DNA of 64,000 nucleotides from IMGVR_UViG_3300031963_000006:1-64000; one strand, 5' to 3'. Numbered from the stretch's first letter, positions 20,064 through 43,191 are shown. Program-made: numbers and translations. The notes: generated by a model from the sequence alone, not told the origin.

Positions 20064-20065
20064 AA

Positions 20066-20407: not shown

Positions 20408-20408
20408 T

Positions 20409-23765: not shown

Positions 23766-24358
23766 ATCCCTGTACTCCCAAAACCGTTATTACCTCTATC
23801 CTTGTTTATTTCTTCTTTGGTTTCTTGTAAATTGACCCATTTTCCGTTAACGACTGGACACAAAACTGCTTGACCTATTTTTGTATCTTTATTTATTGTG
23901 TACGCATAACTATTTGTATTGAAAATAATAACTTGTATCTCACCGGTATATCCATTATCAACAGTTCCAGGGGAATTCATAACAAATAAACCTTGGTTTA
24001 TCGCCAAACCACTTTTAGACCTAACTTGTATTTCATACCCATCTTTAATATCGAATGATAAACCCGTTCTAACTAAACCCCTACCCAAAGGTTGAATAGT
24101 TGTGTCCTCCGTTGCGTATAAATCAAATCCAGAATCGGATGGATAGTTGTAAAAAGGGTCCTTTGCCTCAGGGCGTAACTTCTTATAATTTAAAGTTATC
24201 TTTGGGGTATAATTCAAGATATCATTTTCAAGTTCCTTAACATCAACCCCCGTAACTTTTAAAATCTCATCATAATCAAAATCATAACTGTTATCGGAAA
24301 GTAATTCTTTAATTTTTTCCGATTCTTCTTTTGACATTCCAAAAAAGTCTAAACTCAT
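23762..24358 (-). CDS. dut: trimeric dUTPase with acidic N-terminal extension
   Basis: SGFDL, RSKSGLA, GTVDNGYTGEI, KIGQAV and RGNNGFGSTG (motifs 1-5). Confidence 0.95.
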   Translation of the reverse strand: MSLDFFGMSKEESEKIKELLSDNSYDFDYDEILKVTGVDVKELENDILNYTPKITLNYKKLRPEAKDPFYNYPSDSGFDLYATEDTTIQPLGRGLVRTGLSFDIKDGYEIQVRSKSGLAINQGLFVMNSPGTVDNGYTGEIQVIIFNTNSYAYTINKDTKIGQAVLCPVVNGKWVNLQETKEEINKDRGNNGFGSTGI

Positions 24359-25083: not shown

Positions 25084-26300
25084 TGTACCAAAGTTTTATA
25101 CCATTCAGCTCTATTTTTTGTAACGTTTCTCAAATCATAAGTGTCCTTTACAGTTTCATAAAGTCGTTCACCCATGTCGGTAATCATACTTGGATTTTGA
25201 ATGAGTTTCTTAATGTACTTAGACCAATCACTATGATTTTTATGTTCATCAACAAGTAAAGCGTTTCCATCAACAAAGTTACCATTTTTCAAACAATGTT
25301 TCAAATCTATGGTATATGGTCCAATCTCAGAAGCAATAAGTGCCTTTTTATAAAAACCCGCTTCGATAACCTTAAGTTGAGATTTCATTCTATTAAAGAT
25401 ATGGTTTTTGATTGGGGCCAACGAAATGTCCAACTTAGAGTAGTTCATTGCGTATGTAGTTACAGGTTTTGTCCAAACTCTACGATATGGTAAACTAGTT
25501 TCATTTGGGAATTCAACATCTTTAAATTCCATCAAAAATTTCTTATACTCGTCACCAACAATTTCGTACTTGTTTGTGAAAATTTCTTCATATCTAACCC
25601 AAACAGTTTCGTGAGGAAGAATATCTCTACGTTTTTCTTCTCCTGTTTTTGGATTAATTTCGGTCATTGTACCACGAGTATCAAACCCACAAATAACATA
25701 CTGAACTTTATCATTTATTTCTTTCCCATTTTTCTCAACCATTCCATCCAATAACATTAAATCATGGAGGTGTGAGGAACCACCTAGCCATCCTACTCTA
25801 ATTCTTTCGGATTCTAATGTTGGTTGTCTGAATTGAGGTTCACTTGGGTCAATGGCATTTGGGAAAATAATAACATTTTTGTTTATTTTCTTGATTTCAT
25901 CGGCAAAAATTGTTGTTGTGGTTGTTACGTAACTAGCCTCACGTAGATTGGCAACAATCTTTTCGTTCAATTTATGATTAACAATTAACTGATGAATTGG
26001 ATGTTCCTTTGTAGGTAACCAATAATCGTCAATATCCACAACAACGATAATACCTAATGATTTAAGTTGTCGGATGAGTTGGGGTACAATATCGTAGTTT
26101 TGTCCTATACTTCTGTGAGCGTGAACTATTTGGTATTGTTTCCAATAATTTACATCGTTTATTCTTGGTTCATAATCTATATCAACATGAAAATCATCAG
26201 GATATAGATTTTGTAACATGACATGAGGGTCCAATGACCTAAATTTACCAACACCTGTTCTATCCGATGGTAGAACTAAAACATTAATTTTTTCTTTCAT
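25080..26300 (-). CDS. GT-B (GT4-like) glycosyltransferase
   Basis: VVVDIDDYW, VTTTT..FA, PNAID, GWLGGSSHLHD and DISLAPI....FNRMKSQLKVIEAG. ATG at 26300 (MKEKINVL) preferred over track start 26348. Confidence 0.8.
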   Translation of the reverse strand: MKEKINVLVLPSDRTGVGKFRSLDPHVMLQNLYPDDFHVDIDYEPRINDVNYWKQYQIVHAHRSIGQNYDIVPQLIRQLKSLGIIVVVDIDDYWLPTKEHPIHQLIVNHKLNEKIVANLREASYVTTTTTIFADEIKKINKNVIIFPNAIDPSEPQFRQPTLESERIRVGWLGGSSHLHDLMLLDGMVEKNGKEINDKVQYVICGFDTRGTMTEINPKTGEEKRRDILPHETVWVRYEEIFTNKYEIVGDEYKKFLMEFKDVEFPNETSLPYRRVWTKPVTTYAMNYSKLDISLAPIKNHIFNRMKSQLKVIEAGFYKKALIASEIGPYTIDLKHCLKNGNFVDGNALLVDEHKNHSDWSKYIKKLIQNPSMITDMGERLYETVKDTYDLRNVTKNRAEWYKTLVQ

Positions 26301-26353
26301 AATTAAAAATAATAATGAAAGTATACGACGAAAATTACATTTTATCAACTATG

Positions 26354-28158: not shown

Positions 28159-28984
28159 TGTTCTTTAACGCCTTCATTAATTGTGTTAAACTAATTCCTT
28201 CTTTTTCAGCAAGTTTTTTAATTGATTTTAAATTATTCATTAATAATTTGCTAAGTGTTGAGTCTTTACCAACAACATCTGACTCATCTTTTGATTTTTT
28301 GGTGATGATATCCTCAACCATTTTAACCATTTTTTGTTTTTGGATTTCTGTCAGAGTATCTTTCTCAACGATTCTTTGTTTTAATTTACCGTTCTTCTTT
28401 TTTACGTTTTTAATTTTACCAAATTGTTTAGTTCTTTCAACCGCATTGTCCACTCCCATATCTTTTAGAGTTTTAACACTGTCTTTGAAATCTTTATCTT
28501 TAGTTTCTTCATATCCAAACGCATCCTCCATATTAACTTCAGAAACAACATTATCATCTTTTTCCTCACTTTCACCCCAATACACACGGTAACCTCTTGT
28601 TACAGGGTCGTTTGTTACCCTTGACATTGCAATGGTTTGGTCTGTAGTTTTTTTAGGGTGTAATGTCATATCTAATGGCGGAATCTTGGAACCCAACATT
28701 GTTCCGTCCGCATCAATAATCTCATCAATCTCACCATCTTCTTCAATCGAATTTAAAGCGTTATCGACATTTTTCTTACTCAATTTTTGTTTTGAGTTTA
28801 AAATTTTCTCGATAGTTTTTTTCAACTTATTTTCGTGTTTTTTATTGAACACTTTTTTTTCATCTTTTTTTCGTGATTCTGTCAAAGTTTCTGCAATTGT
28901 ATAATATAAAGAAATTGTCTCTCCTCTATCTTTCAAGAAGAAATAACGACCATTACTAAAATATTCGGTATTGTAATTAATCAT
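28151..28984 (-). CDS. Lys/Glu-rich hypothetical phage protein
   Basis: 277 aa; 8-nt overlap with the next gene. Confidence 0.7.
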   Translation of the reverse strand: MINYNTEYFSNGRYFFLKDRGETISLYYTIAETLTESRKKDEKKVFNKKHENKLKKTIEKILNSKQKLSKKNVDNALNSIEEDGEIDEIIDADGTMLGSKIPPLDMTLHPKKTTDQTIAMSRVTNDPVTRGYRVYWGESEEKDDNVVSEVNMEDAFGYEETKDKDFKDSVKTLKDMGVDNAVERTKQFGKIKNVKKKNGKLKQRIVEKDTLTEIQKQKMVKMVEDIITKKSKDESDVVGKDSTLSKLLMNNLKSIKKLAEKEGISLTQLMKALKNNE

Positions 28985-28995
28985 ATCTTTTTACA

Positions 28996-29022
28996 ATAAA
29001 TACTTCGTTACAATGTATTTAT
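28996..29022. promoter_or_regulatory. back-to-back GTATTTAT motifs (putative divergent late promoters)
   Basis: ATAAATAC (28996-29003), an 11-nt spacer, then GTATTTAT (29015-29022). Each ends 11-12 nt before its divergent ATG (28984 minus, 29035 plus). Confidence 0.55.
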
Positions 29023-29034
29023 CAATAAAAAAGA

Positions 29035-32000
29035 ATGGCGGGTCAGAATATTAATCAATACGTTTACCCAAATTTAAATCCGAAGTTAGCGTTAGAGAGT
29101 TATGATATGTCCTTAACCTCAGATGAGAAAGGATTTAATATGGAGGTGATATTTTCTCCGTATTTGATTGCTCAAACATATGGTAACAGACTTCCATTCT
29201 ATTTCGATATTAATAGTTCAATAACTAACCAAAAATTTACATTAAATTATAAAGAATATAACAGAAATAATATTTTTGTTTCTGAAAATTATTATAACAT
29301 AAATAATGAGGATTTAACTTGTTATTCGGCTCAGACATCTTGTGATATTGGGTTAACGGGTATCGACAATGGACTCGTTACGGGAATGACAGGATATTCG
29401 ATTACATTTACAAAGGGTTTATTCTCAGACGGATTAAAATTTGAGAGATTATATTTTGATAGGAGATTAAAGTTATTTCAAGTAACCGCCAATACCAACT
29501 CACCAAATATTAGATTTTCAGGATTTCCAAATACTGTTTTATATGAAGTTGTAAGTAAATACGGTCAAACCGAAGGATTATATCACGAATTATATGGTGG
29601 TTTTTATCAAGGTTTTTATCGTTTATTTGGGTATGATTATGATATTTTTCCTGAAAGAGTAAACAAGGGTTGGACAGTTGAATTATTATTAAGGCCAAGA
29701 TTAATAAGTGAATATTTTCCAGGACCAGGTGAAACTACATTAAATTTATTATATCCCGAAAATGCTAATACATTTTTCTATTTGGGAACAAGAGCTGAAA
29801 ATAAATTTTACCACCACGCTGACGGAACTCCAAATTGTTTTACAGGATATACTAGATTTACTTCACCATTGACGGGAATATCGACTTGTGCTTGTTGTAA
29901 CAGAACCGTAACAAATAGTAGGTGTATATATGTTTATCCACCACGTTCTAAAGACGGAGTTCATGATACTCATGTTAATTATGGATGTGATAAGTGCGGT
30001 TCGGATAAAATGGTACAGGCAACGTGTGGATGTGGTTGTGATAAAATAGCGTGTGCCACATGTGGGTGGGAATGTCAAATTCATGAATGCGCGGTTATTG
30101 TCGAAGTTACTCCAACTCCCACCCCAACACCAACCGCAACTTTAAGTAACTGTATATTACCTCCAGTTTGTACACCGACATGTAATTCATGTTCAAATTG
30201 TACTGATTGTGTTGATTGTGTTTATACAGGATTTTCGTCAATTGAAAATACTTGTGAGGTTGACCCAAAAATGGATGTGTTATCAAACAACATTTCATTT
30301 AGACTTTGTGGAGACCCTAAAAATCCGGGTATTGGAATAAGAGCAATTAAATTCACAGGTGGATGTGAAACAACGGGTTCTTGTGAAACTTCAGGAATTA
30401 CATACACCACAGGTTATACAGTACTAGATTATTGTACTCCGCCAATTTATGAATACTGTGAAAGTATTAATTATCCGTTCATTGAACAAGAACACTGGTT
30501 CCAACTCGATGCGGTTTGGGAAAGATATACATGGTTAGATACATGTGATTTATGGTATAGAGGTGGATTAGGAGATATTACAAAAAAAGTATATTTAGAA
30601 TCACTGGCAAATAATACAGTTTCTTTAATTGATACGTCATATACAAGGATGGACCCAAAGTCCACTTTGGAAATTGATATTGTAAGTTTAAACGAAAAGT
30701 GGTTACTCGAAGAAAATTTTAGAAAAGGTAGATTGAAAATCTATATTAACGGTAAACTGTTTTATACCATTGAGGATTTTGAAGAGATAATTCCTAGAGC
30801 CCTTAATACCGATAAGGAAAAACAGGTCGGAGTTCCGTTTAACGTATCATGGGGTGGTGGAACACAAGGATTGAGGGAAAATTTAACATTTAACCCTAAG
30901 CCCGCTTGTGACATTGTATTTGGTGTTGAGATTGGTTTGTTATTAATAGGGTTGATTAGTCCAGGTTCTATAAACGCACAATACACATTAACAACTGGTT
31001 TACCTTACAAGGACGAAATACAGGTGAATTTTAGAAATATCCTTAATAAAAAAGATGGTGGTCACTATGAAATTGATAGTAAAGTGATTATACCACCTTT
31101 TGGAATTTCCGGTGTTACATACGAAACATTAAATGAGAATTTTGATGATTTGGATGGAACCGGATATTATCTAAATGTTGAAGTATTTCCAAAAACAATT
31201 ATATCAAATTTTGAGGTGGATTCTAATATAATATTCCTATCACCAACCCCAACACCAACTCCACCAGTCACCCCAACAATAACACCATCGCAAACTGAAA
31301 CCCCTCAACCAACACCTACTCAGACCGAGACACCTCAACCAACACCTACAAATACCGAAACTCCTACACCAACACCAACCCCAACATTTACCCCAACTCC
31401 TGAACAAACAATAACTGATGCGATAATAACTAGTGAAATTGAATATATTTCAGTTGATGGATTATTCTATTTAAAATTTGTTGACCCCGAACAAGCAATA
31501 AACGATGCAATAATTGTTAATGGAAATGAATATATATCTGTTGGAGAAAACTTATATCTAAGTTTTGTTGACCCGATTATTACCACCCCAACACCTACTC
31601 CAACTAACACCAATACACCTACTCCAACTCCGACTTCTACTATAACTCAAACACCTACTCCTACACCTACAATATCGGTTATTTGTGATACATTTACATT
31701 TACAGGTAATAATGCCACTATAACTGTAAACAGTGCAATTAAAACATCAAACGGTGGATGGGATGGCTCTGCATACTCGGTAGAATCTTATACTTCTCCT
31801 GTATCAGTATCATTCCAAGTTTCAAGTAGTAATTTATATTTGATGGGAGGATTTTCATATAATCCAAACGCAAATCCTGGTGACACATATGTGGACATTT
31901 CTTATGGACTTTATATCCAACCTAACTTCTTGGAAATATATGAAAATGGAACTCAGGTTACAGTTCCAGGTGAGATGACAAATACAACGTCAGATGTGTG

Positions 32001-32493
32001 GAAAGTAGATTATAATGGAACGGATGTGAAATATTATAAAAACGGCGGTTTAATTTATACATCATCTAATGCGGTCACACAACCATTACATATTTATTTC
32101 CCTCTTTTAACTTTTAATGAAGGTGTTACTAATGTTTGTGTTATTGGGGACCCATTACCGTCACCTACACCAACACAGACTAACACTCAAACTCAAACTC
32201 CAACTACAACAATAACACCAACCCCAACAAAAACACCAAATTGTGTTCGTCAAATAGTTGTTCCGACATTATGGAATGGAGCAACTAGTATAAACAGCAA
32301 TACACTTCAACTAACTCAGACTTCAGAAACTTTACAAATACAAGTGAATGATGTTATAACAGATAATATTGGGGCGACAAGTTTTGTTGGAATTGTATCT
32401 TCAGACGGAACTTATACATACGTATTTACAGGACCTGGTGGTGGGGTCGCATTTGATTGTGATTTCCCATTAACATTTTCAGGAACTTGTTAA
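29035..32493 (+). CDS. large modular virion protein: incomplete LamG/ConA-like domain with Cys-rich insert, Thr/Pro linkers, C-terminal beta domains
   Basis: GWTVELLLRP, WFQLDAVW and LKIYINGKL are LamG-like strands. Many CxxC clusters at about 29880-30460; TPTP tracts at about 31240-31410, 31580-31675 and 32155-32240. Confidence 0.75.
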   Translation: MAGQNINQYVYPNLNPKLALESYDMSLTSDEKGFNMEVIFSPYLIAQTYGNRLPFYFDINSSITNQKFTLNYKEYNRNNIFVSENYYNINNEDLTCYSAQTSCDIGLTGIDNGLVTGMTGYSITFTKGLFSDGLKFERLYFDRRLKLFQVTANTNSPNIRFSGFPNTVLYEVVSKYGQTEGLYHELYGGFYQGFYRLFGYDYDIFPERVNKGWTVELLLRPRLISEYFPGPGETTLNLLYPENANTFFYLGTRAENKFYHHADGTPNCFTGYTRFTSPLTGISTCACCNRTVTNSRCIYVYPPRSKDGVHDTHVNYGCDKCGSDKMVQATCGCGCDKIACATCGWECQIHECAVIVEVTPTPTPTPTATLSNCILPPVCTPTCNSCSNCTDCVDCVYTGFSSIENTCEVDPKMDVLSNNISFRLCGDPKNPGIGIRAIKFTGGCETTGSCETSGITYTTGYTVLDYCTPPIYEYCESINYPFIEQEHWFQLDAVWERYTWLDTCDLWYRGGLGDITKKVYLESLANNTVSLIDTSYTRMDPKSTLEIDIVSLNEKWLLEENFRKGRLKIYINGKLFYTIEDFEEIIPRALNTDKEKQVGVPFNVSWGGGTQGLRENLTFNPKPACDIVFGVEIGLLLIGLISPGSINAQYTLTTGLPYKDEIQVNFRNILNKKDGGHYEIDSKVIIPPFGISGVTYETLNENFDDLDGTGYYLNVEVFPKTIISNFEVDSNIIFLSPTPTPTPPVTPTITPSQTETPQPTPTQTETPQPTPTNTETPTPTPTPTFTPTPEQTITDAIITSEIEYISVDGLFYLKFVDPEQAINDAIIVNGNEYISVGENLYLSFVDPIITTPTPTPTNTNTPTPTPTSTITQTPTPTPTISVICDTFTFTGNNATITVNSAIKTSNGGWDGSAYSVESYTSPVSVSFQVSSSNLYLMGGFSYNPNANPGDTYVDISYGLYIQPNFLEIYENGTQVTVPGEMTNTTSDVWKVDYNGTDVKYYKNGGLIYTSSNAVTQPLHIYFPLLTFNEGVTNVCVIGDPLPSPTPTQTNTQTQTPTTTITPTPTKTPNCVRQIVVPTLWNGATSINSNTLQLTQTSETLQIQVNDVITDNIGATSFVGIVSSDGTYTYVFTGPGGGVAFDCDFPLTFSGTC

Positions 32494-32512
32494 AACAACA
32501 TAATAAACTAAT

Positions 32513-32521
32513 GATATTTAT
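32513..32521 (+). promoter_or_regulatory. GATATTTAT motif upstream of 32534
   Basis: GATATTTAT ends 12 nt before the ATG. Confidence 0.45.
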
Positions 32522-32533
32522 AAAATAAAAAAC

Positions 32534-35080
32534 ATGTCACTAACAGGAAAAACCATAGGTCAATTAACCTTATTAGGAACTCCAACTGCGGATACTTTAA
32601 TTCCGGTTGAATATAATGATGCAACGTATCATATTGAGTTCTCATCAATAACTTCTAATTCAACAGTTGAGGTAACTTACTCTGAACTTGTTGATAAAAT
32701 TACTGGTGAGACATTAAACACGGGAAGTTATTATATTATAACCGACTTTAGAACTTGTTATGACCAGCCAGATTATAATAATGTAAAAGACCCAATTACT
32801 ACGGGAATATATAAAAGTGCCGATACCGTATCGCCTATTGTTGTGTTTGCAACATCTGCAAATACAATATCTATAGATGCGTTCCAACCTGAGTTTCCTT
32901 TTGATAAAATAAAATACGATTATAGTTTTAACGCAACTGAGCATACTGCAGGACCTGCATTTGGTAGAATTACAGAAAGAATTGATAATTTTAATAATAG
33001 AACGGACTATGACCACAGAACTATATTATTTAAGAGATATCGTGGATATTCATATAATGAAAACAGTCCACTGGCAGGACTTGTCGGTATAAGTGGTATA
33101 ACAGGAACCACAGGAATATTATATGGTAATACAGGTACAACATTTAACTCAAACTTATTTGTAGGAGATTATATTGCGGTAAGAAATTTAAATCCTTATC
33201 TTTTCGAGATTATTTCAGTTGAGGGTGATTCTCTTGCCACAATATCAGGCGTTACTATAAGTGAAACAACCGATTCTCCTTACTATACCGCATTCGATGA
33301 TGGTATAATGAGTTATTATCAACCAAATGTAAGAGCAAATGAAGTTTTTGAATATACAACATTTGGAGATGCATTGGTGGATAGTTCTGTAGTAAATAAC
33401 TATATCGGTGACCAAGCCAATCTATATTTAGAAGATGGTACTGGGGAGTTTTTATTAGCAAATAATGTGTTTATAAGTGGTTCATTCCTTAATAACAGAA
33501 TTGGAAATGGTTCTTATAATAACACATTTAATGATGACTGTGACAGTAATCAAATTGGAGACAGATTTTATAATAACTCAACAAATGATGATTTTGATGG
33601 TAATATAATCGGAGATTTTTTCAGTAACAATTATATCACGGCTAATTTTAACAATAATAGAATTGGTAGTGATTTTGATTTTAATATTTTAATCGGAGGG
33701 TCTTTTTACCGAAACAATATTGGAAATGACTTTGCTAGTAATGTTTGGACTAATGGTGATTTCCAAAATAATGAGATAGGAAACCAATTTAATGATAATA
33801 ATATCTATGATGATTTTTATAATAATGATATTGGTAATGGATATAATAATAATGAAAGTTATTCAGAATTTTATCGTAATTTAATTGGGAACGGATATAA
33901 TAGTAACACCGTATATTCAGATTTCTATGAAAATAATATTGGACACGTTTTTGTAGATAATACCATTGGAACCAATTTAACTATTGGGACATACGATTTT
34001 TACAGAAACATAATTGGTAGTGGATTTAACAATAACGAAATTACAAATGATTTCTATGAAAATGAAATTGGTTATGGTTTTAATGATAACACAATTAGGT
34101 CATCATTTAGTTACAATGACATTTTAAATAATTTTTATGAGAACACTATATATTCGGTTTTTGAAAAAAATAAAATAATGAATGATTTCAATACTTGTAC
34201 TATAGGTAACTCTGAGGATATCGGGGATAATGACTTCATAAGTAACGATATAATGAATAATTTTAAAGGTAACGATATTCTAAATGATTTTGAGAATAAC
34301 ACAATTAAGACCGATTTTAAGGGAAACGAGATTTTTGCGGATTTTAGCAATAATAACGTTGGATTTGCATGTGCGGTTAACGTTTTTAGTGGAGATGTGA
34401 CAAATAATATTTTTGGTGATTTTTTCACTCTGAATACTTGTGAAGGACAGTTTAGATACAACACTATTGGAATTGGTTTTTTTAGTAATGACATAGGTGA
34501 TAGTTTTGGAGTAGGAGGAGGAAACTATAGAGGTAATAGAATTGGAAATAATTTTAGTAATAATACTATTGGTGAATATTTTTACAGTAACATAATTGAA
34601 GAAAATTTTGAGAATAATACGGTAGGTTACTATTTTCAGTCCAATGATATAAAAGTTAATTATTTAAATAATATTGATTTTACAACACTTCAAGGAAACG
34701 TATTGACAATTTCTAACACAACTCCAAGCGGGGCAACAGATTCAACTTTTTCTGTAACGCAAACGACTACAACAGGTCACGGAATAGGTGCGGAATTCGA
34801 GGTAATTGTTTCGGGTAATATTGTAACTACTGTAACAATATTGTCTGCAGGAACTGAATATTTAATTGGTGACCAAATTACTGTAAGTGCGGTTCAGTTC
34901 GACGGAGCAGAGGATTTAGTAATAACAGTCGATTCTGTTTCAGATGAACCGCTTGTGTATACAACAGCAAATTGTACAATTCAAACTTCAAGAGACGGAT
35001 TTAATTTAATTACAACTTTAGACTGGAATACAGTTTCTTGGTATATTTCAGATGCAATAAACGGACCATATAATCCATAA
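32534..35080 (+). CDS. Asn-rich right-handed beta-helix protein (tailspike/fibre-like)
   Basis: Many imperfect F..N.IG..F..N repeats at about 33450-34680; N-terminal anchor-like KTIGQLTLL motif; C-terminal G.GAEFEV...TILSAGTEY..GD module. Confidence 0.75.
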   Translation: MSLTGKTIGQLTLLGTPTADTLIPVEYNDATYHIEFSSITSNSTVEVTYSELVDKITGETLNTGSYYIITDFRTCYDQPDYNNVKDPITTGIYKSADTVSPIVVFATSANTISIDAFQPEFPFDKIKYDYSFNATEHTAGPAFGRITERIDNFNNRTDYDHRTILFKRYRGYSYNENSPLAGLVGISGITGTTGILYGNTGTTFNSNLFVGDYIAVRNLNPYLFEIISVEGDSLATISGVTISETTDSPYYTAFDDGIMSYYQPNVRANEVFEYTTFGDALVDSSVVNNYIGDQANLYLEDGTGEFLLANNVFISGSFLNNRIGNGSYNNTFNDDCDSNQIGDRFYNNSTNDDFDGNIIGDFFSNNYITANFNNNRIGSDFDFNILIGGSFYRNNIGNDFASNVWTNGDFQNNEIGNQFNDNNIYDDFYNNDIGNGYNNNESYSEFYRNLIGNGYNSNTVYSDFYENNIGHVFVDNTIGTNLTIGTYDFYRNIIGSGFNNNEITNDFYENEIGYGFNDNTIRSSFSYNDILNNFYENTIYSVFEKNKIMNDFNTCTIGNSEDIGDNDFISNDIMNNFKGNDILNDFENNTIKTDFKGNEIFADFSNNNVGFACAVNVFSGDVTNNIFGDFFTLNTCEGQFRYNTIGIGFFSNDIGDSFGVGGGNYRGNRIGNNFSNNTIGEYFYSNIIEENFENNTVGYYFQSNDIKVNYLNNIDFTTLQGNVLTISNTTPSGATDSTFSVTQTTTTGHGIGAEFEVIVSGNIVTTVTILSAGTEYLIGDQITVSAVQFDGAEDLVITVDSVSDEPLVYTTANCTIQTSRDGFNLITTLDWNTVSWYISDAINGPYNP

Positions 35081-35084
35081 TAAT

Positions 35085-35333
35085 ATGAGAATTAATATTT
35101 TAACAGAAAATGATAAAGTAGAACAAGTAAGAGAAGCTTGGGTTACTAAAAACGTAATGAAAATTCCAGTATCTCCAACAGGAGAAGAACCAGCAACACA
35201 TTGGTTTTGTTCAATGGCTGGAGAGGAATCCAAAATGATGGAGATTTACAATAAAAAGAATTTATCTATAATGGAATTAGAAATAGGTCCAAAAGAGTTT
35301 CTTAACAAATGGGGTCTGAAGATTATAAAATAA
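35085..35333 (+). CDS. small hypothetical protein, 82 aa
   Basis: Starts 4 nt after the beta-helix gene stop. Confidence 0.65.
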   Translation: MRINILTENDKVEQVREAWVTKNVMKIPVSPTGEEPATHWFCSMAGEESKMMEIYNKKNLSIMELEIGPKEFLNKWGLKIIK

Positions 35334-35938
35334 TTAAAAATTTTATAAGTCATAAAGAAGTTAATGACATATTAAAATGGATTGATACTTTAAATAATCA
35401 AGAATTTAAAGCAAATCACCATTTAGCAGAACTTTCAAAAACCCTTAATGGTAATTCATATATTTTTGATATCTCTCAAACAGAATATACAAATTATATA
35501 ACAAATTTTCAGTCGGTGGGTGAGGTCAAAAAAGACCCCGTCCCAGACTTTATTATTAATATAATAGATAGAATTTCTGAAACAATTAACTTACCAAAAG
35601 AACATATGTTCTTACAGGCGGTTGATATGAATAAGGGTGGAAAAATTGACCCACATTATGACGCATCAATACAAGGGTATATCAATTACAAATGTAATGT
35701 TAGTGTTTTATCTGAAGATTATAATCTATATGTTGATAAAACATATGTCCCTGTTGAGCAGAGAGACCTTTATTGTTTTGAGGCATCTCTTTATAAACAT
35801 TGGACAAATGAATTTAACTCAAGGAGAGTTTTTTTAAGTTTTGGTTTTATTGTCCCATATAATGTCACGGGTCGAAATGAAAATGACCCAAGAGTTAGAT
35901 TAAGTCAAAGAATACAAAAGTATTTCCAACAACTTTAA
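35309..35938 (+). CDS. 2OG-Fe(II) dioxygenase (prolyl-hydroxylase-like fold)
   Basis: GGKIDPHYD (HxD), CNVSV, distal YKHW, and RRVFLSFG (2OG-binding R-x-S type). Confidence 0.8.
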   Translation: MGSEDYKIIKNFISHKEVNDILKWIDTLNNQEFKANHHLAELSKTLNGNSYIFDISQTEYTNYITNFQSVGEVKKDPVPDFIINIIDRISETINLPKEHMFLQAVDMNKGGKIDPHYDASIQGYINYKCNVSVLSEDYNLYVDKTYVPVEQRDLYCFEASLYKHWTNEFNSRRVFLSFGFIVPYNVTGRNENDPRVRLSQRIQKYFQQL

Positions 35939-35945
35939 TATTTAT
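35939..35945 (+). promoter_or_regulatory. TATTTAT motif upstream of 35962/36079
   Basis: Lies immediately after the oxygenase stop codon. Confidence 0.35.
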
Positions 35946-36078
35946 ACAATAAAGTTGTTTGATGAAAGATTTGACCTTTAAAAGTCCGTTCAATTATAAA
36001 AAAAATTCTATATTTTTTAACAATAAACGAAATCTCGAATTTACAAAAAATTCGTTAATAAATAATTCGTAAAATTGG

Positions 36079-39000
36079 ATGGCCGTTAAAGTTAAAATAG
36101 GTAGTAATAATTATAGTGGTCAAACCGCAAATATAGTATTTTATCCTGAAACGGGTGGTACTATAAATGTAGGTCAACAAATTATACCATATGATTATGT
36201 AACAGATTATTATTTTGGTACATATGAACTTATCTTTAATGCCGACCAATATACATGTAACTTTACAATATCATCCTCTAATCCATTTCCTGTTTACATA
36301 GAACCAACACCTGGTCCTAAAACGTACATATTGGATGGTACCTACAAACAGGACCCTGAAAATTTACCAACCAATGATTTAACTGGCACGTCATTTAATG
36401 GATTAGAAACAAATATACTTTTAGAAAAATATTTTGCAGGAACTTTTGATGGGGGAATATCTCAATTCAGAATGTACGTTGAGCCGTTATCGGCCCCAGA
36501 AGTGAAACATAATTTCAAGTTACTGAAGGACAGGTTTAACATGTTTAATCCTGATTGTCCTGATTGTTTGTTACCTGAATGTGAAATTACAGGGATTACT
36601 TATCAGTTGGCAACACCTGAACCTACAAGTACAAGGACTCCGACTCCAACAAATACCAAAACTCCAAGACCAACTCAAAATCCGACAAGTACACCAACCA
36701 ATACAAATAATCCAACTCAAACACCGGCCAGCACGTCATGTCCGATTGATACACCTAATGTAACCCCAACAAATACAAAAACACCAACCGTAACCAAAAC
36801 TAACATACCAACAAAAACACCTACAGTTACTCAGACAAAAACACCTGACATTACTCAAACACCAACTAAAACATCAACTCCGACTAAAACACAAACAAGA
36901 ACTAATACCTCTACCCCAACACCAACAAATATTGGTACAACAATTTATTCATCACAAACAAATTGTGATTTAACAAACAATATTACAATTGACGGCCCTT
37001 CGATTTATTATTATGAAATAGACTTAGGAAGTGATGTTGGTTTTGTTAATCTAACGTTTAATGCAACTAATATCCCTGATAGATTTAGAGTCGAATGGGA
37101 TGGTAATGTGGTTATAGATACAGGATTTAGAGGAAATCCATTATATAACACTCAATTAAATAATTTGGGTTATCCTAGTGTGTCAGGGGTTGGTAGCGGT
37201 TTTATAACATTTAATAAAACAGCACCTTCACCAACTACTGTGGTATTAATAGTCGAGTCACCGATTCAAGGGGCAATATATAGTTTTAATTTATCATGTC
37301 CTACACCTTATGTTACAACAACTCCAACAAATACTCCGACAAAAACTGAAACTCCGACTAATACTCCGACAAAAACTGAAACAAAAACTCCTACAGTTAC
37401 TAAAACTGAAACACCAACCCCTACCATTACTAAAACAGAAACCCCAACTGTTACTAAAACACCAACTGTTACTAAAACAGAAACAAGAACTCAAACCCCA
37501 ACGAAAACAGAAACACCAACGGTTACTAAGACACCAACCGTTACTAAGACGGAAACCAAAACACAAACTCCTACAAAGACACAGACGCCAACTTACACCT
37601 CAACCCCAACATCAACATATTATTCTCCAGTGAACTTATTCTTCAGCGGTTGTTGTAATCCATATTATATTTATAGAATTTTCAATGTGCCACTTGTTGT
37701 TTCTGAAACGATAGTTGACGGACAAACATATCTAATTCAAGGTGTCGGATTCTCAGGTTGTGGAACGTATTTCGAATCATTATCATCGGCCGACTTCTCA
37801 TATTCTTATATTAGTTTCTCATCAGAAACTGATTGTGAAACTTGTACAATTGGAAGTCCATGTCCTACTCCAACTCCTACCGTCACCTCAAGTAAAACTC
37901 CAACTAAAACCCCAACCACGACAAAAACACCAACACAAACTCCAACTCCAACAAAAACGGAAACTCCGACTCCGACACAAACAAAAACACCTACTAAGAC
38001 AAATACCAAAACTCCAACAGAAACACCAACTAATACTCCAACAAATACAAATACACCGACTGAAACAGTCACACCTACAGTCACTAAAACTCCAACTAAA
38101 ACAAGTACATCTACACCTACGGTCACTAAAACACAAACTCCAACAAAAACTGGAACACCAACAAATACAAAAACTCCAACTTCAACCAAAACTAATACCC
38201 CTACTAACACACCAACAAAAACTAGTACTAAAACACCAACTTCAACTCAAACTAACACCCCAACAGTTACTCAGACACCAACCACAACACCTACAAACAG
38301 TATCACACCTTCAGTAACTAAAACTAACACACCAACAAGAAGTGTTACCCCAACAGTTACTAAAACAAATACTCCTACACAGACTTATCCTAGTGGACCT
38401 GTGGTTAGTGAATGTTCTGTATTATATAATGACAGTACCCTTGTTTATTCGTACACACCACAAACTAATACAAGTGTGTTACTTCCCGTTACGGGGGCTC
38501 AAAGTGGTAATGATATTGCCCACACTACTTCAAAATTATGGATTAATCCTTCAACAAGTCAAACCATAGATGAATGGAATATATCTTTAAATCCGTTTAT
38601 TGCGGTTTATAATCAATCGATTGTATTACCTCACCCTATTGGTAATGGTTTGGCAGCGATTGATAACACAAGATTAATTTCAAGCAACATATCGGTAAAT
38701 CCTAATACAATTGTTGAATTATTAATTGTTGGAGGAAACTTTGTGTCAACACCTAAAATTACACTTCCTGATGGTAGAATCGTCTCAGGTGATTTATTAT
38801 TAACTACAAATAATAAGTTACTTGTAACAACAACTAATGGTGTAAATACCTTCTTGACTCAATATAATTATGACAACGGACAACCTGAAGTTGAAATTAC
38901 TCTAATAATTCCATTACCATGGGGTATGTTTAGTGATAATGGTAATTTATACATAATGAATGGTCAAACTCCTGGTGGAGTTTATAGGATTAACTTAGAT

Positions 39001-39372
39001 TTCCCATATAATCAAACATTTATTATTAATGCCGGAAGACGGATATCTGGAGCGTCCCAACTACCACAATGTGTTGATGTTAACATCAATCCATCCGGTC
39101 AAACATCTACACAAACCCCAACACCAACTGTTACCCCAACTATAACACCAACGTTGACTGTATACCCCCAACCTTTTGCAATATTCATAGAATGTTGTGA
39201 ACCATTTAGAAAGATAAGGGTATTCAATGTTCCCGCATTAGTATTAGCCGGACTAATATCTGACAATGTATACTATGTTGAAGCTATTGGTTTCTCAGGA
39301 TGTGCGACATATTCGCCATTCTTGACAACTTATGACTTCACTTATGAATATTTAAATATAACAACTCCATAA
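36079..39372 (+). CDS. modular Thr/Pro-repeat virion protein (LamG C-terminal strands, beta-sandwich, propeller-like domain, two CC...C modules)
   Basis: AGTFDGGISQFRMYVEPL; DTGFRG module; long TPTKT tracts; CCNPY and CCEPF modules. Confidence 0.8.
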   Translation: MAVKVKIGSNNYSGQTANIVFYPETGGTINVGQQIIPYDYVTDYYFGTYELIFNADQYTCNFTISSSNPFPVYIEPTPGPKTYILDGTYKQDPENLPTNDLTGTSFNGLETNILLEKYFAGTFDGGISQFRMYVEPLSAPEVKHNFKLLKDRFNMFNPDCPDCLLPECEITGITYQLATPEPTSTRTPTPTNTKTPRPTQNPTSTPTNTNNPTQTPASTSCPIDTPNVTPTNTKTPTVTKTNIPTKTPTVTQTKTPDITQTPTKTSTPTKTQTRTNTSTPTPTNIGTTIYSSQTNCDLTNNITIDGPSIYYYEIDLGSDVGFVNLTFNATNIPDRFRVEWDGNVVIDTGFRGNPLYNTQLNNLGYPSVSGVGSGFITFNKTAPSPTTVVLIVESPIQGAIYSFNLSCPTPYVTTTPTNTPTKTETPTNTPTKTETKTPTVTKTETPTPTITKTETPTVTKTPTVTKTETRTQTPTKTETPTVTKTPTVTKTETKTQTPTKTQTPTYTSTPTSTYYSPVNLFFSGCCNPYYIYRIFNVPLVVSETIVDGQTYLIQGVGFSGCGTYFESLSSADFSYSYISFSSETDCETCTIGSPCPTPTPTVTSSKTPTKTPTTTKTPTQTPTPTKTETPTPTQTKTPTKTNTKTPTETPTNTPTNTNTPTETVTPTVTKTPTKTSTSTPTVTKTQTPTKTGTPTNTKTPTSTKTNTPTNTPTKTSTKTPTSTQTNTPTVTQTPTTTPTNSITPSVTKTNTPTRSVTPTVTKTNTPTQTYPSGPVVSECSVLYNDSTLVYSYTPQTNTSVLLPVTGAQSGNDIAHTTSKLWINPSTSQTIDEWNISLNPFIAVYNQSIVLPHPIGNGLAAIDNTRLISSNISVNPNTIVELLIVGGNFVSTPKITLPDGRIVSGDLLLTTNNKLLVTTTNGVNTFLTQYNYDNGQPEVEITLIIPLPWGMFSDNGNLYIMNGQTPGGVYRINLDFPYNQTFIINAGRRISGASQLPQCVDVNINPSGQTSTQTPTPTVTPTITPTLTVYPQPFAIFIECCEPFRKIRVFNVPALVLAGLISDNVYYVEAIGFSGCATYSPFLTTYDFTYEYLNITTP

Positions 39373-39377
39373 TATTA

Positions 39378-41156
39378 ATGTTTAAAAGTGTAAATATATT
39401 AAAATCAGTTAGCCCCGAAGGAGTTTTTCAATTAAATAAAACTTCATTTGATGACATTTTAAAAAATTCACATTCTAAAATTACATTACAGTTACCGATT
39501 GGAAATGAACTTCATAACTTAGAATTAAACAAATCAGAATTATTTGGGTCTAATTTTTATAGAACTTATAGCTCATCTCAAATCTCACAAAGAAATTTGG
39601 GGTCTCACTATAAAGGTAAATTAAGTGGATTTGAAAATTCATCGGTTGCTGTTTCATTCACTGAATTGGGGGTTGTAGGTTTAATTTTGGATGGTGAAAA
39701 TCAATATGAAATTTCCCCATTTGGTACTGATTCATATAAAGTTTTACCAGTCGAGGGTGTACATGAATTTGAATGTGGGGCCGGTCTTTCCCCGGACTAC
39801 GACGAGGAAAAAAAGAACTCGTTAGAAAACAATCTCAGGTTAAGTTCCAATGGGGATATTTTAATGAAATCCCCAACCGCAACAACAAGATGTCTTAATG
39901 TTTATTGGGAGGCGGATACGGACATATATGACACGCTAGGAGTAAACTCAGAATCATATTTAGCATCACTATTTAACGCGGTACAATTATTATTTTCTAA
40001 TGATGGTATACAAATTTATTTATCTGATTTATTCGTAAATTCAGGAACTTCATTTTACTATCCAACCATTCCATATAATCAAATTGGTACTTTGGATATG
40101 TTATATGAATTTGAGGTGGTTAGACCGACATTTAATGGGGATGCCGCGCAACTTTTTTCATTTAACAAAGGGTATGGTGGAGGAGTTGCTTGGGTTGATG
40201 CGTTATGCGCAAGGCCATACGCTTTTTGTTGGATAACATCGTCATTCCAACAACCAATGACATATAGTTGGACCGTGGCGGCTACAACACATGAACATGG
40301 ACACACGTTCGGTTCACCACACACATTTTCTTGTAGCTGGAATACGAATAATTTTCAACCTGGAGACAATCCCCGAGGTTGCTCAAGAATTGATAGTTGT
40401 AGAATTGAATGTACCGCAATTTTGAGCTCTGGTTGCACTGTGGCTCAACAAAATCCAGGATATGGAACTTGTAGTATAACATCTTCATCAAATTGTGGAG
40501 CATGTTGCGCTCCCAATTATTGTTGTGGAGTCCCTGGAAGTCCGGCTCAAGGTGGAACAATTATGAGTTATTGTCACCAAGTTTCGGTAGGTACTAATCT
40601 GAACTTAGGTTTCGGACCACAACCTAGACAAAGAATGCTCGATGCAATCAATAGCCTACCTTCAACTTGTATAGAATGTTTGGGCCCACCACCTGAAGAA
40701 ACTCTAACACCAACACCAACTCTCACTAAAACACCCACCCCGACACCATCAATAGGTACCAGTCCTAATCCTACCCCAACTCAAACTATAACACCTACTA
40801 AAACAATAACTAACACACCAACTTTAACTAAAACTCCAACACAAACTAAAACACCAACAATAACTAAAACTTTAACACCTAGTATAACCCCAACAATAAC
40901 CAGCACACAAGTCAATAATAATTGTCAGTATTGTTTGAGTTTACATCCATGTACAGTTAATAGGTTTTTTTGGCAATGTTGTGAGCCGTATGATAGTTTT
41001 AGAGTTTATCTAATACCTTTTGATGTTTCAGAGACTCTAGTAAATGGAAATACATATTATGTAGAAGCCGTTGGTTTTTCAGGATGTGCCGTGTATGATG
41101 TAACATTAACAAATGCGGATTTTTCATATGAATATATAAACATTATAACTCCTTAA
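39378..41156 (+). CDS. reprolysin-like (M12B) zinc metalloprotease with prodomain, Thr/Pro stalk and C-terminal CC module
   Basis: HEHGHTFGSPH at 40290-40322, Met-turn GTIMSYC, GGVAWVDALC, and prodomain HYKGKLSG...VAVS and FECG. Confidence 0.88.
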   Translation: MFKSVNILKSVSPEGVFQLNKTSFDDILKNSHSKITLQLPIGNELHNLELNKSELFGSNFYRTYSSSQISQRNLGSHYKGKLSGFENSSVAVSFTELGVVGLILDGENQYEISPFGTDSYKVLPVEGVHEFECGAGLSPDYDEEKKNSLENNLRLSSNGDILMKSPTATTRCLNVYWEADTDIYDTLGVNSESYLASLFNAVQLLFSNDGIQIYLSDLFVNSGTSFYYPTIPYNQIGTLDMLYEFEVVRPTFNGDAAQLFSFNKGYGGGVAWVDALCARPYAFCWITSSFQQPMTYSWTVAATTHEHGHTFGSPHTFSCSWNTNNFQPGDNPRGCSRIDSCRIECTAILSSGCTVAQQNPGYGTCSITSSSNCGACCAPNYCCGVPGSPAQGGTIMSYCHQVSVGTNLNLGFGPQPRQRMLDAINSLPSTCIECLGPPPEETLTPTPTLTKTPTPTPSIGTSPNPTPTQTITPTKTITNTPTLTKTPTQTKTPTITKTLTPSITPTITSTQVNNNCQYCLSLHPCTVNRFFWQCCEPYDSFRVYLIPFDVSETLVNGNTYYVEAVGFSGCAVYDVTLTNADFSYEYINIITP

Positions 41157-41172: not shown

Positions 41173-43191
41173 ATGAAACATTTAAGTCTACATAAAAGTT
41201 TTACAAATGATGGTGTTTTTGAATTAAATTTAAATACAATAACCTCACTTAAAACTCAAACTAATGAAAGAATTTATCTGTCTTTACCTATAGATGGGAT
41301 TGAAAAACAAGTTGAAATATATAGAACAAATATTGGGTCCGATGATTTTAAAGTTGTAAATGAATTAGGTCAAATTTTATCGTATGATTCAGGAATTCAC
41401 TACGGTGGTCGGGTCATTGGCTCTGAAAAATCATTTGTTGCATTATCTTTTAGTGATGACGGAATTATCGGAATAGTTCAAGATAATACTAAAGAGTATG
41501 GGTTTACCAAAATAGATGAAAATTTTCATAGACTTCATGAAACGATTAATGATAACGAAGGGTTTGAATGTGGATGTGAATTACTATCACATAATAATAA
41601 TTTACAGGAATTAAAATTATCCCCAAAAACTTTAACGTTACCATATGCTTCTAAATGTATTAATATACGATGGGAAGCGGATTATGATGTGATACAACAA
41701 TTTGGTGGAACGGGTCCGGCCATAACATGGTTGACCGCACTTTTTAATGCACAAAAACAACTTTATGCTAATGATAATATTCAGGTTAATTTAGCCTTAT
41801 TATTCTTATGGGAAAATGGTCCTTCAGGTTTTGTTGTGGGAACAACAGATGTTATACTAGATGCCTATGTAAATTATAGAAATGCAAATGGTGGCATTGC
41901 CGAGAATTGTGGTATGCTACTGAGTTTTGGAACTTCTCCAACAAGCAATTCAGGTGCGGGTATCGCATATGTGGGGGCTCTTTGTGGTCCCAACAAATAT
42001 GGTTATACACAATTAAAAAGAGGAGATTCTACAGGAACTCCTAGTTCTACTGTATATAGTAGAAGTGTTAAAGTAGTTACTCACGAGCAAGGTCACTTAT
42101 TAGGTTCAAGACATACTTTTAGATGTAATTGGAATACCGCTTGGGTATATGGAGATACTACTTTTGGTGCTGAGGCCATTGACGGGACTTCCACGGTAGA
42201 GGTACCTCCAGGAGTTCCTGCGTGTGCTCAACTACCAATACCACCCGGATTTCAAGGAACTATAATGAGTTATGGAGACAGTGCAGGAACCGCTCCGATA
42301 AATTTCGCATTAGGGTTTGGTCCAATACCTAGACAAAGAATGTATGACTTCATTAATAACAATTTTGCGTGTTTAACATGTCAGGCGGTTCCATTTGAAA
42401 CCCCAACACCAACTCCAACAACAATTACTCAAACTCCAACACCAACTCCAACCAAAACACCAACACAAACCCCCACAAAAACTCCAACTAAAACAAATAC
42501 ACCAACTGTAACTCCAACCAAAACATCTACTCCAACACCAACTAAAACTATAAACGCAACACCTGACCCCACTCAAACTCCAACTATAACTAAAACAGTA
42601 ACAAATACAAATACTCAAACCACCACCGTAACACCCACCAATTGTTGTAGTAGATTTACATTAACTTCAGGAGTAAACGACACTGGAGGTAGTACATTTA
42701 ATGTAATTTCATGTAATGGAATCCCGCAAACAACGACTGTACCTCAAGGAACTTCAATAGATATTAATTGCGCATCCACAGTAACATTAACTTCAGGAAC
42801 AGGAACATTTGTAAGATATCCTGGTTGTGTTTGCACAAGTCCAACCCCAACTAAAACTAACACCCCTACAGTAACCCCAACTACCACGATAAATCAAAGT
42901 CCTCAACCGACCCCTACACCAACAGCAACACCAACGGCTACACCTCTTAGGGGAGATTGTGCTTATTGTATAAGTATTTATCCTTGTTCCGTTAGTAAAT
43001 ATTTTACCAGTTGTTGTGAACCATTTGAAAACATTAGAATATTTTTAATACCAGCAAATGTCGCCGACACATTAATAGATGGTGAATCATACTATGTTGA
43101 GGCTGAAGGTTTTTCTAATTGTGCTATTTATAATGAAAGTATAACAACCGCTCAGAATTCGTATAAATATATAAGTATAACCCCTAATTGA
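41173..43191 (+). CDS. reprolysin-like (M12B) zinc metalloprotease paralog 2
   Basis: [11 protein letters not shown] at 42082-42114, [16 protein letters not shown], prodomain HYGGRVIG and FECG; Thr/Pro stalk; CCEPF C-terminus. Confidence 0.88.

Follow-up and report, generated by a model that had tools for sequence, protein, structure and literature searches.

Strand-deficient β-sandwiches that are completed by another polypeptide are known from chaperone-usher pili, where the process is called donor-strand complementation. The missing strand is the edge strand of an Ig-like fold and is supplied by the next subunit of identical type, building a polymer. Phage genes may also be divided. The "genes in pieces" of T4-like phages include nrdA of Aeh1, split by mobE, and the T4 topoisomerase 39/60, split by mobA (PMC2988022). 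In Aeromonas phage 25, gene 43 is present as 43A and 43B, whose products co-purify; the polypeptides encoded by such pieces must reassemble, and split NrdA is reported to be fully active (PMC2988022). These splits affect enzymes; a free-standing homing endonuclease gene is linked to them, or an untranslated spacer in the case of phage 44RR (PMC2988022). A published account of phage fibres, in its available part, describes a single fibre protein of one phage that corresponds to two proteins in its relatives. The second of these is attached via the first, and both carry receptor-recognition domains.

The locus described here belongs to an uncultured freshwater phage of 321 kb, whose tail-fibre gene cluster is headed by a split lectin-fold gene pair. 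It lies in a window of 64,000 nt, the whole stretch of DNA that was analyzed. A conserved lectin-fold protein of ~716 aa, here called the core, is encoded by two genes with 5.4 kb between them, ORF A (P0001) and ORF B (P0002) (Table 1). Their origin as halves of one ancestral protein is supported far beyond chance. We estimate at roughly 0.72 the probability that they arose by natural fission of a core protein of the tail-fibre/adhesin cluster and reassemble non-covalently after translation. The putative tail-fibre/adhesin role in the virion is drawn from two sources, the neighbouring genes, including a tail-fibre PHROG match at 59822-62668, and fold matches to tailspikes and carbohydrate-binding modules. 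Tblastn of each half against 50,697 deposited phage genomes gave no match, so there is no cultured relative within that set. Searches of A, B, the three intervening genes and the contiguous core against Pfam, PHROGs and NCBIfam returned no informative family, and the sole matches were low-complexity PHROGs on the Pro/Thr linkers. Promoter and terminator scans stayed at or below chance level. An RNA run (X20) gave only short pieces of the locus (31575-31756 and 32595-33179) and is uninformative on transcription, starts and junctions.

Table 1. Features of the split locus, in window coordinates.
Feature	Position	Strand	Description
ORF A (P0001)	29035-32493	+	1152 aa; core residues 1-620
A_N	29035..30894	+	ORF A residues 1-620; first ~86% of the ~716-aa core
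A_C1	30895..31269	+	~125-aa module after the break on the A side, every split lineage
Rest of ORF A	31270..32493	+	Pro/Thr linkers, repeats, a further domain, terminal 84-aa domain
Tandem repeats	31399-31572		two repeats of 29 aa in ORF A
Terminal domain	32239-32490		84-aa domain closing ORF A
g848	32534..35080	+	848 aa; 9/18-residue Asn/Gly-rich repeats; conserved in the phage group
g82	35085..35333	+	82-aa ORF that always accompanies g209
g209	35309..35938	+	conserved, 209 aa; found at 95 related viral loci
ORF B (P0002)	36079-39372	+	1097 aa; last ~100 core residues at positions 80-180
B_N	36079..36315	+	~65-aa N-terminal module and Pro-rich linker
B_mid	36316..36618	+	ORF B residues 80-180; last ~100 residues of the core
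Final β-strand	36454-36480		GISQFRMYV, within B_mid
B_C	36619..39372	+	variable arm: long Pro/Thr/Lys linkers and several globular domains

The initial annotation of this DNA had proposed that one ancestral gene was split here, with a LamG domain divided between two ORFs, and had suggested checking homologs for contiguity. The proposal holds up, each ORF encoding a complementary share of one LamG/concanavalin-like sandwich. In 77 of 80 related viral loci, the sequences matching P0001 1-620 and P0002 ~83-178 are adjacent, in one frame and in one ORF, so the halves are not always separate genes. The gap between the two parts in contiguous loci is 1-25 nt, or 208 nt in two of them. Among more than 1798 database relatives, the best 120 cover 100% of the 716-aa core in a single ORF, and distant relatives of 450-600 aa are also contiguous. 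About 200 viral contigs match A_N over residues 1-620, similarity ending at 617-620. A profile built from contiguous relatives covers only residues 1-620 of P0001, and B_mid corresponds to its positions 621-714. At the break, P0001 reads ...RLKIYINGKL...FNVSWGGGTQGLRENLTFN and then PKPACDIV... (P621 at nt 30895), and P0002 reads ...EPTPG and then PKTYILDGTYKQDP...NILLEKYFAGTFDGGISQFRMYVEPLSAPEV... (P80 at nt 36316). The contiguous core gene is, by this comparison, shown to be the ancestral state. Most related phages have a single ~716-aa core chain, usually followed by a variable C-terminal arm.

The fold was assessed on a contiguous relative, L078, rather than on the window's own proteins. 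Its AlphaFold2 model, built with 107 sequences, has a mean pLDDT of 86.3 and a pTM of 0.86 and supersedes an earlier run with 33 close sequences (pLDDT 43.7). The model contains one concanavalin/LamG-like jelly roll from about residue 50 to 700, with the last strand at 663-671, so the break is predicted to cut a single domain. Within the window, A_N would form most of this jelly roll with large inserts, one of them Cys-rich and Pro/Thr-containing at about 285-420; B_mid would contribute the final strand, a helix and an NPDCPDC motif. VIA-align comparisons with concanavalin-like jelly rolls gave Z scores of 12-14.7 over ~190-236 residues, spanning model positions ~24-52 to 685-705 (9vyh_q: Z 14.7, rmsd 6.0, 236 aligned; 5hon_B: Z 14.4, rmsd 3.0, 195 aligned). 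Pentraxin-domain matches, including PAPP-A, reached Z of about 10 with the same model, and laminin-G and neurexin LNS matches near Z 10 came from the first, low-confidence model. Foldseek matches against the PDB were weak (best E 0.015) because the inserts break up the sandwich. According to the model, the core is a two-sheet jelly roll of the concanavalin A-like lectin/glucanase superfamily. The LamG-type Pfam models PF13385, PF02210 and PF00054 gave no match at E up to 0.1 in P0001, P0002, the L078 core or the P0003 core, and NCBIfam gave no LamG-type match; an Atlas feature lead of 0.93 points to PF13385 clusters.

The genome is a metagenome assembly, and the Pro/Thr linker repeats yield many spurious contig joints, which would favour reading the arrangement as an assembly chimera or a dying pseudogene. 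However, the same arrangement occurs in three IMG/VR contigs, one of them a distinct, 97%-identical genome. As to the assembly, which the initial annotation had suggested checking, the stretch is present in 19 DNA runs from 17 studies, and contigs from independent runs (X9, X14) show 0 differences across the two junctions. The split exists as real DNA in many independent samples. Each ORF is long and intact (dN/dS 0.03-0.08), and at least five further diverged split lineages exist. A chimera or pseudogene is refuted for practical purposes. On the protein tree, the split is old, widespread and scattered: at least six state changes are forced by the starred branches, and an AU test rejects a single split clade (delta lnL 1235, p 5e-80). 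DNA identity between the split L284 and the unsplit L346 is 85% before the junction and 67.6% beyond it.

The split is always accompanied by the same two flanking modules, A_C1 and B_N. The A_C1 motif, PKPxCDI..GV.I...PGSI..Y.L, is supported by an alignment of six diverged A-type proteins, and phmmer matches lie right after the junction in P0129, P0130, P0138, P0153, P0187 and P0273. A paralogue of A_C1 lies within a 704-aa ORF of the same genome. Several other large genes of the cluster begin with B_N-like modules; tblastn places them at downstream gene starts in relatives (L010 12857, 14864 and 16689; L016 15017). B_N also matches a 1634-aa ORF of its own genome and overlaps matches of the g1765 N-terminus. 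Both modules are under purifying selection, with dN/dS of 0.072 for A_C1 and 0.083 for B_N. In unsplit relatives the terminal domain of ORF A closes the gene preceding the g848 homologue; tblastn with A_C2 309-392 finds matches just upstream of g848 homologues in L236, L223 and L144, and identity is 96-99% in L005, L281 and L277.

The break lies in a surface loop that is hypervariable and immediately precedes the last strand. Here L007 and L008 carry a 63-aa in-frame insert, and P0174, P0179, P0173, P0230, P0249, P0255 and P0262 carry nested inserts (110-290 aa) of unrelated sequence; short relatives lack the loop. The nested inserts were considered as unsplit cassette intermediates and discarded, since they are neither A_C1 nor B_N. 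The peptides quoted in the initial annotation are present, and CCTAA does occur at 30895 and 36316, 5421 nt apart (3 x 1807), each time opening a Pro codon in the same frame. Its reading as a meaningful junction did not survive comparison, because the pentamer encodes Pro-Lys linker codons and neither match nor frame is conserved. Junction frames agree in only four of eight distinct split architectures, the junctions of the 97%-identical split relative L005 are out of frame, and the right-hand Pro-Lys is absent from several other split lineages. The match is a chance one, a possibility that the annotation had itself raised; the pentamer has 130 occurrences in the window against 140.7 expected from shuffles. 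Junctions of this age are not placeable to a single nucleotide.

Features of known mobile elements were sought around the insert. Beyond CCTAA, a repeat search found no terminal repeats; there were no terminal inverted repeats and no transposase match (Pfam, PHROG), and other split lineages lack the CCTAA pair. No Pfam or PHROG match to an HNH, GIY-YIG or LAGLIDADG homing endonuclease was found in the C-terminal part of A, g848, g82 or g209. Cassettes of the type with adjacent halves measure 844-1936 nt, without room for an endonuclease gene, and the smallest (844 nt) consists of just A_C1, a stop, about 80 nt and B_N. The genes between the halves, taken in the initial annotation for a β-helix, an 82-aa ORF and an oxygenase, had been proposed there as the cassette that caused the split, a view that fails because A and B are split and adjacent in L284-L291 and L276 and the trio lies 12-26 kb downstream in unsplit relatives. 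Homologues of g848 with 42-85% identity are found at that distance from the unsplit core gene in other contigs, and g82 matches by tblastn (49-95% identity) lie directly upstream of g209 homologues. The position of g848-g82-g209 in this genome would thus reflect a second, later relocation of a conserved gene block. g848 has no Pfam, PHROG or NCBIfam match; by eye, its repeats look solenoid-like. g209 is possibly a 2OG-Fe(II) oxygenase, a lead taken from an Atlas feature match to PF13640 clusters (0.94, 175 shared features), and has no Pfam or NCBIfam match. A 211-aa ORF after the core gene of L016 is no homologue of g209, and a synteny idea based on it was dropped.

How the halves might work as one protein was framed in the initial annotation as complementation in trans or as rejoining by recombination or splicing. 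Rejoining to one chain could proceed by RNA splicing or trans-splicing, ribosomal bypass, DNA rearrangement during infection, or protein trans-splicing with A_C1 and B_N as a split intein. The shared frame of the two CCTAA sites in this genome would suit it, as would an invariant Cys after the break on the A side (PxC-D) that superficially resembles the first residue of an intein. Several observations nevertheless make rejoining very improbable. The frame is shared in only half of the architectures and not in L005, and the intervening sequence codes for conserved proteins and modules under purifying selection. A search with all 4227 Rfam families (E up to 1, 28900-39500) gave no match, hence no group I/II intron ribozyme by Rfam at the borders of the intervening sequence, into which both reading frames continue. 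In four runs of independent metagenomes, there is no contig that links 30895 directly to 36316. At the protein level, Pfam finds no Hint/intein domain in A or B, and A runs 530 residues past the break. B_N ends in a Pro-rich linker (...EPTPGPK before TY here, ...TATTVEY in other lineages), without His-Asn followed by Cys, Ser or Thr. Modules like A_C1 and B_N also sit in other proteins, away from any break.

Non-covalent reassembly in trans is the most likely outcome and the best supported, by prediction, selection and co-occurrence. Both halves are under strong purifying selection, with dN/dS against L005 of 0.033 for A_N and 0.041 for B_mid (dS 0.45-1.15). B_mid keeps 24 of the 24 residues invariant in contiguous proteins, and all 11 split B proteins retain 23-24 of them. 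A_N and B_mid each occur exactly once in the genome, and wherever sequence upstream of a B-type gene is available, it contains an A-type gene. The heterodimer prediction that had been suggested as a check (P0001:1-625 with P0002:70-180) scored 0.91 in three runs, with 0.00 for the best control. Of 80 solved complexes 58 attained that mark, as did 2 of 110 mismatched pairs; these counts apply here only roughly, since our own alignments were used. At least 88% of contacts are common to the runs, which have a partner pLDDT of at least 79 and predict an interface of about 410 contacts. The tightest of these connect P0002 126-133 with P0001 57-59, 183-186 and 213-220, so that the B_mid strand would sit between two A strands, pairing with 57-59 and 213-220. 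The complex prediction yields contact pairs, and strand order is otherwise taken from secondary-structure output and fold alignments. Since the complex alignments were cut from contiguous relatives, the prediction largely replays intramolecular contacts; it indicates that the window's own sequences are still compatible and is not proof of binding.

The halves might alternatively have ceased to cooperate. A_N would then function or decay with an incomplete sandwich, B would be an ordinary fibre protein anchored by B_N, and B_mid would be kept for a role of its own, for instance as an arm base with the NPDCPDC motif. B might attach in the manner of the several genes that are headed by B_N-like modules and lack B_mid, and chain A is predicted with a pLDDT of 66-69 even with unrelated control partners, compared to 76-80 with B. 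This explanation is unlikely, however. A segment of ~100 residues with one or two strands, a helix and long loops would hardly fold alone, and it has kept the family-invariant residues across at least five diverged lineages and has a low dN/dS. The strict co-occurrence of A-type and B-type genes, one each, and the extensive predicted interface with the B strand within A's sheet also argue for cooperation.

If the halves do reassemble, A would keep core residues 1-620 followed by its own arm beginning with A_C1, and B would open with B_N, continue with the last ~100 core residues and end in a second arm. After translation, the B segment would wrap onto A, and GISQFRMYV would insert between A's N-terminal strand and strand 213-220. 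The sandwich would be rebuilt non-covalently, and one core would thereby display two arms. The split form would have spread, or been lost, repeatedly through recombination at the loop. As a tentative extension, the unit A_C1-stop-start-B_N could be an exchangeable, endonuclease-free "branching joint" that enters and leaves one surface loop of a conserved lectin-fold core by recombination and each time converts a one-armed into a two-armed fibre base through donation of an inner strand. In this view, A_C1 and B_N may clamp the two chains.

Few cases are on record of gene fission that cuts a single folded domain and is then maintained under selection in many lineages. The locus offers a natural test of how far a β-sandwich can be divided and still assemble, and it suggests a route by which a conserved fibre-base protein may acquire another variable arm while needing no new attachment site. 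In a large group of uncultured freshwater jumbo phages, it also singles out one loop as a hot spot of domain insertion and recombination. The locus is a caution for annotation, since both ORFs and more than a dozen similar ones in public data would pass as hypothetical proteins unrelated to each other. To protein engineering, the pair offers a candidate natural self-assembling split tag. Strand donation, if true, would be a natural example of a single domain working as two pieces; the branching joint, if true, would give phages a new means of varying their receptor-binding arms and would amount to a natural docking system based on a split domain.

Compared with Laminin_G_3/concanavalin A-like domains (PF13385 and relatives, sialidase CBMs, phage tailspikes), the core is modelled with the same two-sheet jelly-roll fold and, by eye, has a last-strand motif of the same kind, but its sandwich is stretched over 650 residues with large inserts. 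The likeness to the lectin-like subdomain of clostridial neurotoxin binding domains is at the fold level only (9-15% identity). As in the T4-like genes in pieces, two coding regions replace a gene that related phages carry uncut, and both pieces are kept, with reassembly predicted in the present case. Unlike those genes, the target is a structural lectin-fold protein and not an enzyme, the searches gave no endonuclease, and a single β-sandwich is cut through. In addition, both pieces have gained modules, and split lineages are dispersed across the tree. The published fibre case resembles the two-arm outcome proposed here; its proteins are unrelated to these, and a cut through one folded domain with strand donation is not described in the available part of that account. 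Like donor-strand complementation in chaperone-usher pili, to which there is no homology, the predicted arrangement has a sandwich lacking a strand completed by another chain. Unlike in pili, that strand would be an inner strand of a jelly roll, supplied by a dedicated partner that was once part of the same chain.

The two ORFs of the window that carry the sandwich pieces, ORF A (protein P0001) and ORF B (P0002), are, judged by their homologues, halves of one gene. Similarity between P0001 residues 1-640 and viral contigs, found in ~200 contigs, breaks off at residue 617-620, and for P0002 residues 1-180 it begins in most contigs only at residue 80-89. Both pieces lie in the same frame of a single ORF, 1-25 nt apart, in 77 of 80 loci (tblastn). 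The ancestral single gene postulated by the initial annotation is thus upheld, alignment of homologues placing the halves contiguously in relatives rather than always in separate genes; the peptides it quoted occur exactly in ORF A and ORF B. At loci L007 and L008 the gap is 208 nt, from an in-frame insert at the break site. This insert of ~63 aa (RACSVWNYSIGDV..., 11861-12067 in both) sits exactly at the window's split loop and leaves the ORF contiguous. Many contiguous ORFs (716-781 aa) terminate directly past the second piece, which defines a conserved core of ~716 aa and, beyond it, a variable arm, often a papain-like peptidase. A word search returned >1798 relatives of the core, and the 120 listed each cover ~100% of the 716 aa. 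Among the 80 loci, the window-type split occurs only in L004 and L006, identical to the window, and L005, whose A_N (ORF A residues 1-620) is 97% identical. The window's genome has one A_N, one B_mid (ORF B residues 80-180) and no contiguous copy.

Coordinates of the split gene, its modules and the surrounding genes (window positions unless another locus is named)
Feature	Position	Strand	Remarks
ORF A (P0001)	29035-32493	plus	1152 aa
ORF B (P0002)	36079-39372	plus	1097 aa
C-terminal 84-aa domain of A	32239-32490; L005 13262-13513; L281 10931-11182; L277 6617-6868; L236 9701-9952		
B_N-type module	36079-36270; 50213-50425; G000:C1:147334-147642 (-); L010 12857, 14864, 16689		~65 aa
Reprolysin-like (M12B) zinc metallopeptidase domains	39378-41156; 41173-43191; 43203-50120		three consecutive large proteins; Pfam E 1e-6 to 8e-13
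Tail-fibre PHROG match	59822-62668		
Long operon with glycosyltransferases	12000-26350	minus	adjoins fibre cluster
Glyco_tranf_2_5	22350-23765	minus	within glycosyltransferase operon
PHROG glycosyltransferase	25080-26348	minus	within glycosyltransferase operon

The split is neither unique nor recent. The A-type proteins P0129, P0130, P0138, P0153, P0187 and P0273 have a core that ends at the window's break and continues into the same module as in ORF A, the ~125-aa A_C1; they are 41-57% identical to P0001 (P0273, a fragment, is outside this comparison). The B-type proteins P0240 and P0251 are 59-63% identical to P0002 1-177, and a junction-spanning alignment search yielded further split genomes, L281-L291. 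ORF B directly follows ORF A in L284-L291 and L276, the smallest cassette between the A and B parts being 844 nt (L291), whereas three genes, g848, g82 and g209, separate them in the window, L005, L281, L282, L283 and L277. In unsplit relatives, the three genes are conserved 12-26 kb downstream of the core gene, preceded immediately by a gene whose last 84 residues match those of ORF A. The cassette of beta-helix, 82-aa ORF and oxygenase genes, to which the splitting had been attributed, is therefore a second event, and the block would be a later arrival between the halves. The split proper consists of A_C1 and a stop codon, ~80 nt, and a start codon followed by B_N, the N-terminal module of ORF B.

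In a phylogeny built from 88 A_N sequences, 13 rows are split and occupy at least six separate positions beside unsplit sisters (L276 with L096, L284 with L346, L277 with P0149, and the window and L005 with L045), and a single split clade is rejected (AU test, delta lnL 1235, p 5e-80). It is implausible that this pair of modules originated independently at a single site. Split L284 and unsplit L346 share 85% of their DNA sequence up to the junction but 67.6% past it, which indicates a recombination breakpoint at the loop. We infer repeated exchange, or loss through in-frame deletion; the changes may have run in either direction.

A first model of the core, based on 33 closely related sequences, reached a pLDDT of only 43.7. 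With a 107-sequence alignment built after exhaustive profile search, the contiguous L078 protein was modelled at a mean pLDDT of 86.3 and pTM of 0.86, with loop 605-650 at confidence >92, a last strand at 663-671 and a helix at 677-687. Against 48,161 PDB representatives (VIA-align), this model matches concanavalin-like jelly rolls at Z 12-14.7, including a cyanopodophage tailspike, carbohydrate-binding modules of arabinanase and sialidases, and the lectin-like subdomain of clostridial toxin binding domains; the toxin matches, with identities of 9-15%, indicate similarity of fold only. Pentraxin-type domains score near Z 10, as did laminin-G and neurexin LNS domains with the first, low-confidence model. 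Since the jelly-roll alignments span the core from about residue 24-52 to 685-705, the whole core is modelled as a single sandwich with large inserts, its last strand lying past the break. The earlier LamG label holds for the fold; no Pfam LamG model matches, and the Atlas feature neighbours of the core are Laminin_G_3 clusters. The sandwich carries an inserted segment (window 29890-30290, P0001 ~285-420) that is rich in Cys, with numerous CxxC-like pairs and a Pro/Thr run inside it. Model confidence is low in this segment alone (L078 316-396), and many distant relatives have a shorter version that lacks profile positions 355-399. In an hmmsearch survey of 150 representatives with the core profile, the loop between positions ~617-620 and 648-650 varied widely, being absent from short distant relatives and carrying unrelated nested inserts of 110-290 aa in P0174, P0179, P0173, P0230, P0249, P0255 and P0262. 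The break site is thus a hot spot.

The initial annotation had also pointed to an in-frame CCTAA shared by the two sides. The two copies, one at P621 of A (30895) and the other 5421 nt downstream at P80 of B (36316), are confirmed, but have no evident meaning as a junction. The 5-mer occurs 130 times in the window (140.7 expected, roughly chance level); the genome is A+T-rich, and each of the two sites is a Pro-rich linker between modules. Pro-Lys is found in most lineages on the A side (CCTAA or CCAAA) but only in the window, L005 and L284 on the B side, and the junctions share a frame in four of eight distinct split architectures, L005 being out of frame. The match is therefore coincidental, or at most a relic that is beyond proof. 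Rejoining by recombination or splicing, raised alongside it, is not supported: an Rfam scan of 28900-39500 (E up to 1) gave no match, A and B matched no intein or Hint domain, and none of the contig joints listed, all within Pro/Thr repeats with sides of 20-36 nt, links 30895 to 36316. The sequence between the halves is coding and conserved. The stretch is present in 19 DNA runs from 17 studies, and contigs from the independent runs X9 and X14 bridge both junctions with 0 differences. The only RNA run, lake metatranscriptome X20, gave short pieces; its contigs identical to window 31575-31756 (ORF A) and 32595-33179 (g848) may represent expression or carried-over DNA.

Complementation in trans fares better. 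Relative to L005, dN/dS is 0.033 for A_N, 0.072 for A_C1, 0.083 for B_N and 0.041 for B_mid (dS 0.45-1.15). Of the 24 residues that are invariant past the break in 33 contiguous proteins, each of the 11 split B proteins retains 23-24. B_mid occurs exactly once per genome slice, and an A-type gene precedes every B-type gene having upstream sequence. Two-chain prediction of P0001 1-625 with P0002 70-180 scored 0.91 in three runs (best control 0.00), a mark attained by 58 of 80 solved complexes and 2 of 110 mismatched pairs, counts that are rough, with custom alignments used. The runs agreed in at least 88% of contacts, with partner pLDDT of at least 79. P0002 126-133 (GISQFRMY), closest to P0001 57-59, 183-186 and 213-220, is predicted to lie between two A strands. 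Because the alignments were cut from contiguous relatives, the prediction indicates compatibility, not binding. Most likely, the halves would reassemble by donation of a B strand into the A sandwich.

The modules at the break recur elsewhere. A_C1-like domains occur within other proteins, and B_N-like domains form the N-termini of several neighbouring genes and also lie within some C-terminal arms. The B_N type heads several large cluster genes in the window and relatives, lies past the core (~721-805) in contiguous P0081, P0059, P0066, P0068 and P0025, and is probably a common anchor or adaptor domain. Between genomes that share only 41-60% identity in A_N, the C-terminal 84-aa domain of ORF A reaches 96-99% (dS 0.13 against L005, elsewhere 0.45-1.15); it seems to be a module, moving with g848, that was exchanged recently or is under exceptional constraint. 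ORF A also has two tandem 87-nt (29-aa) repeats, 74% identical, at 31399-31572, flanked by Pro/Thr linkers. In the block, g209 (35309-35938) always follows g82, with stop and start overlapping. By eye, it has an HxD...H...R pattern, and its Atlas features match 2OG-Fe(II) oxygenase clusters (0.94); neither Pfam nor NCBIfam gave a match.

The source virus record (321,403 bp, direct terminal repeats, G+C ~32%; the window is its bases 133-64132) carries, from 29 kb of the window on, a succession of very large plus-strand genes with abundant Pro/Thr linkers. Based on these genes, the three metallopeptidase domains and the tail-fibre match, we read the region as a putative fibre/adhesin cluster. 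Peptidase "payloads" are unusual for proteins of a fibre cluster; many contiguous core relatives end in a papain-like C1 peptidase instead of M12B. Possible targets of modification by the neighbouring glycosyltransferase operon are virion proteins or the host surface. Deposited phage genomes searched with the A and B halves gave no match to either.

The fission of this conserved lectin-fold fibre-cluster protein inside one domain is real, ancient and recurrent. Its nearest known parallels are the "genes in pieces" of T4-like phages (PMC2988022) and, in phage DT57C, the branched LtfA/LtfB fibres (PMC4728585). The present case is set apart by the lack of an endonuclease, by the cut through a beta-sandwich and by the modules gained on both pieces.
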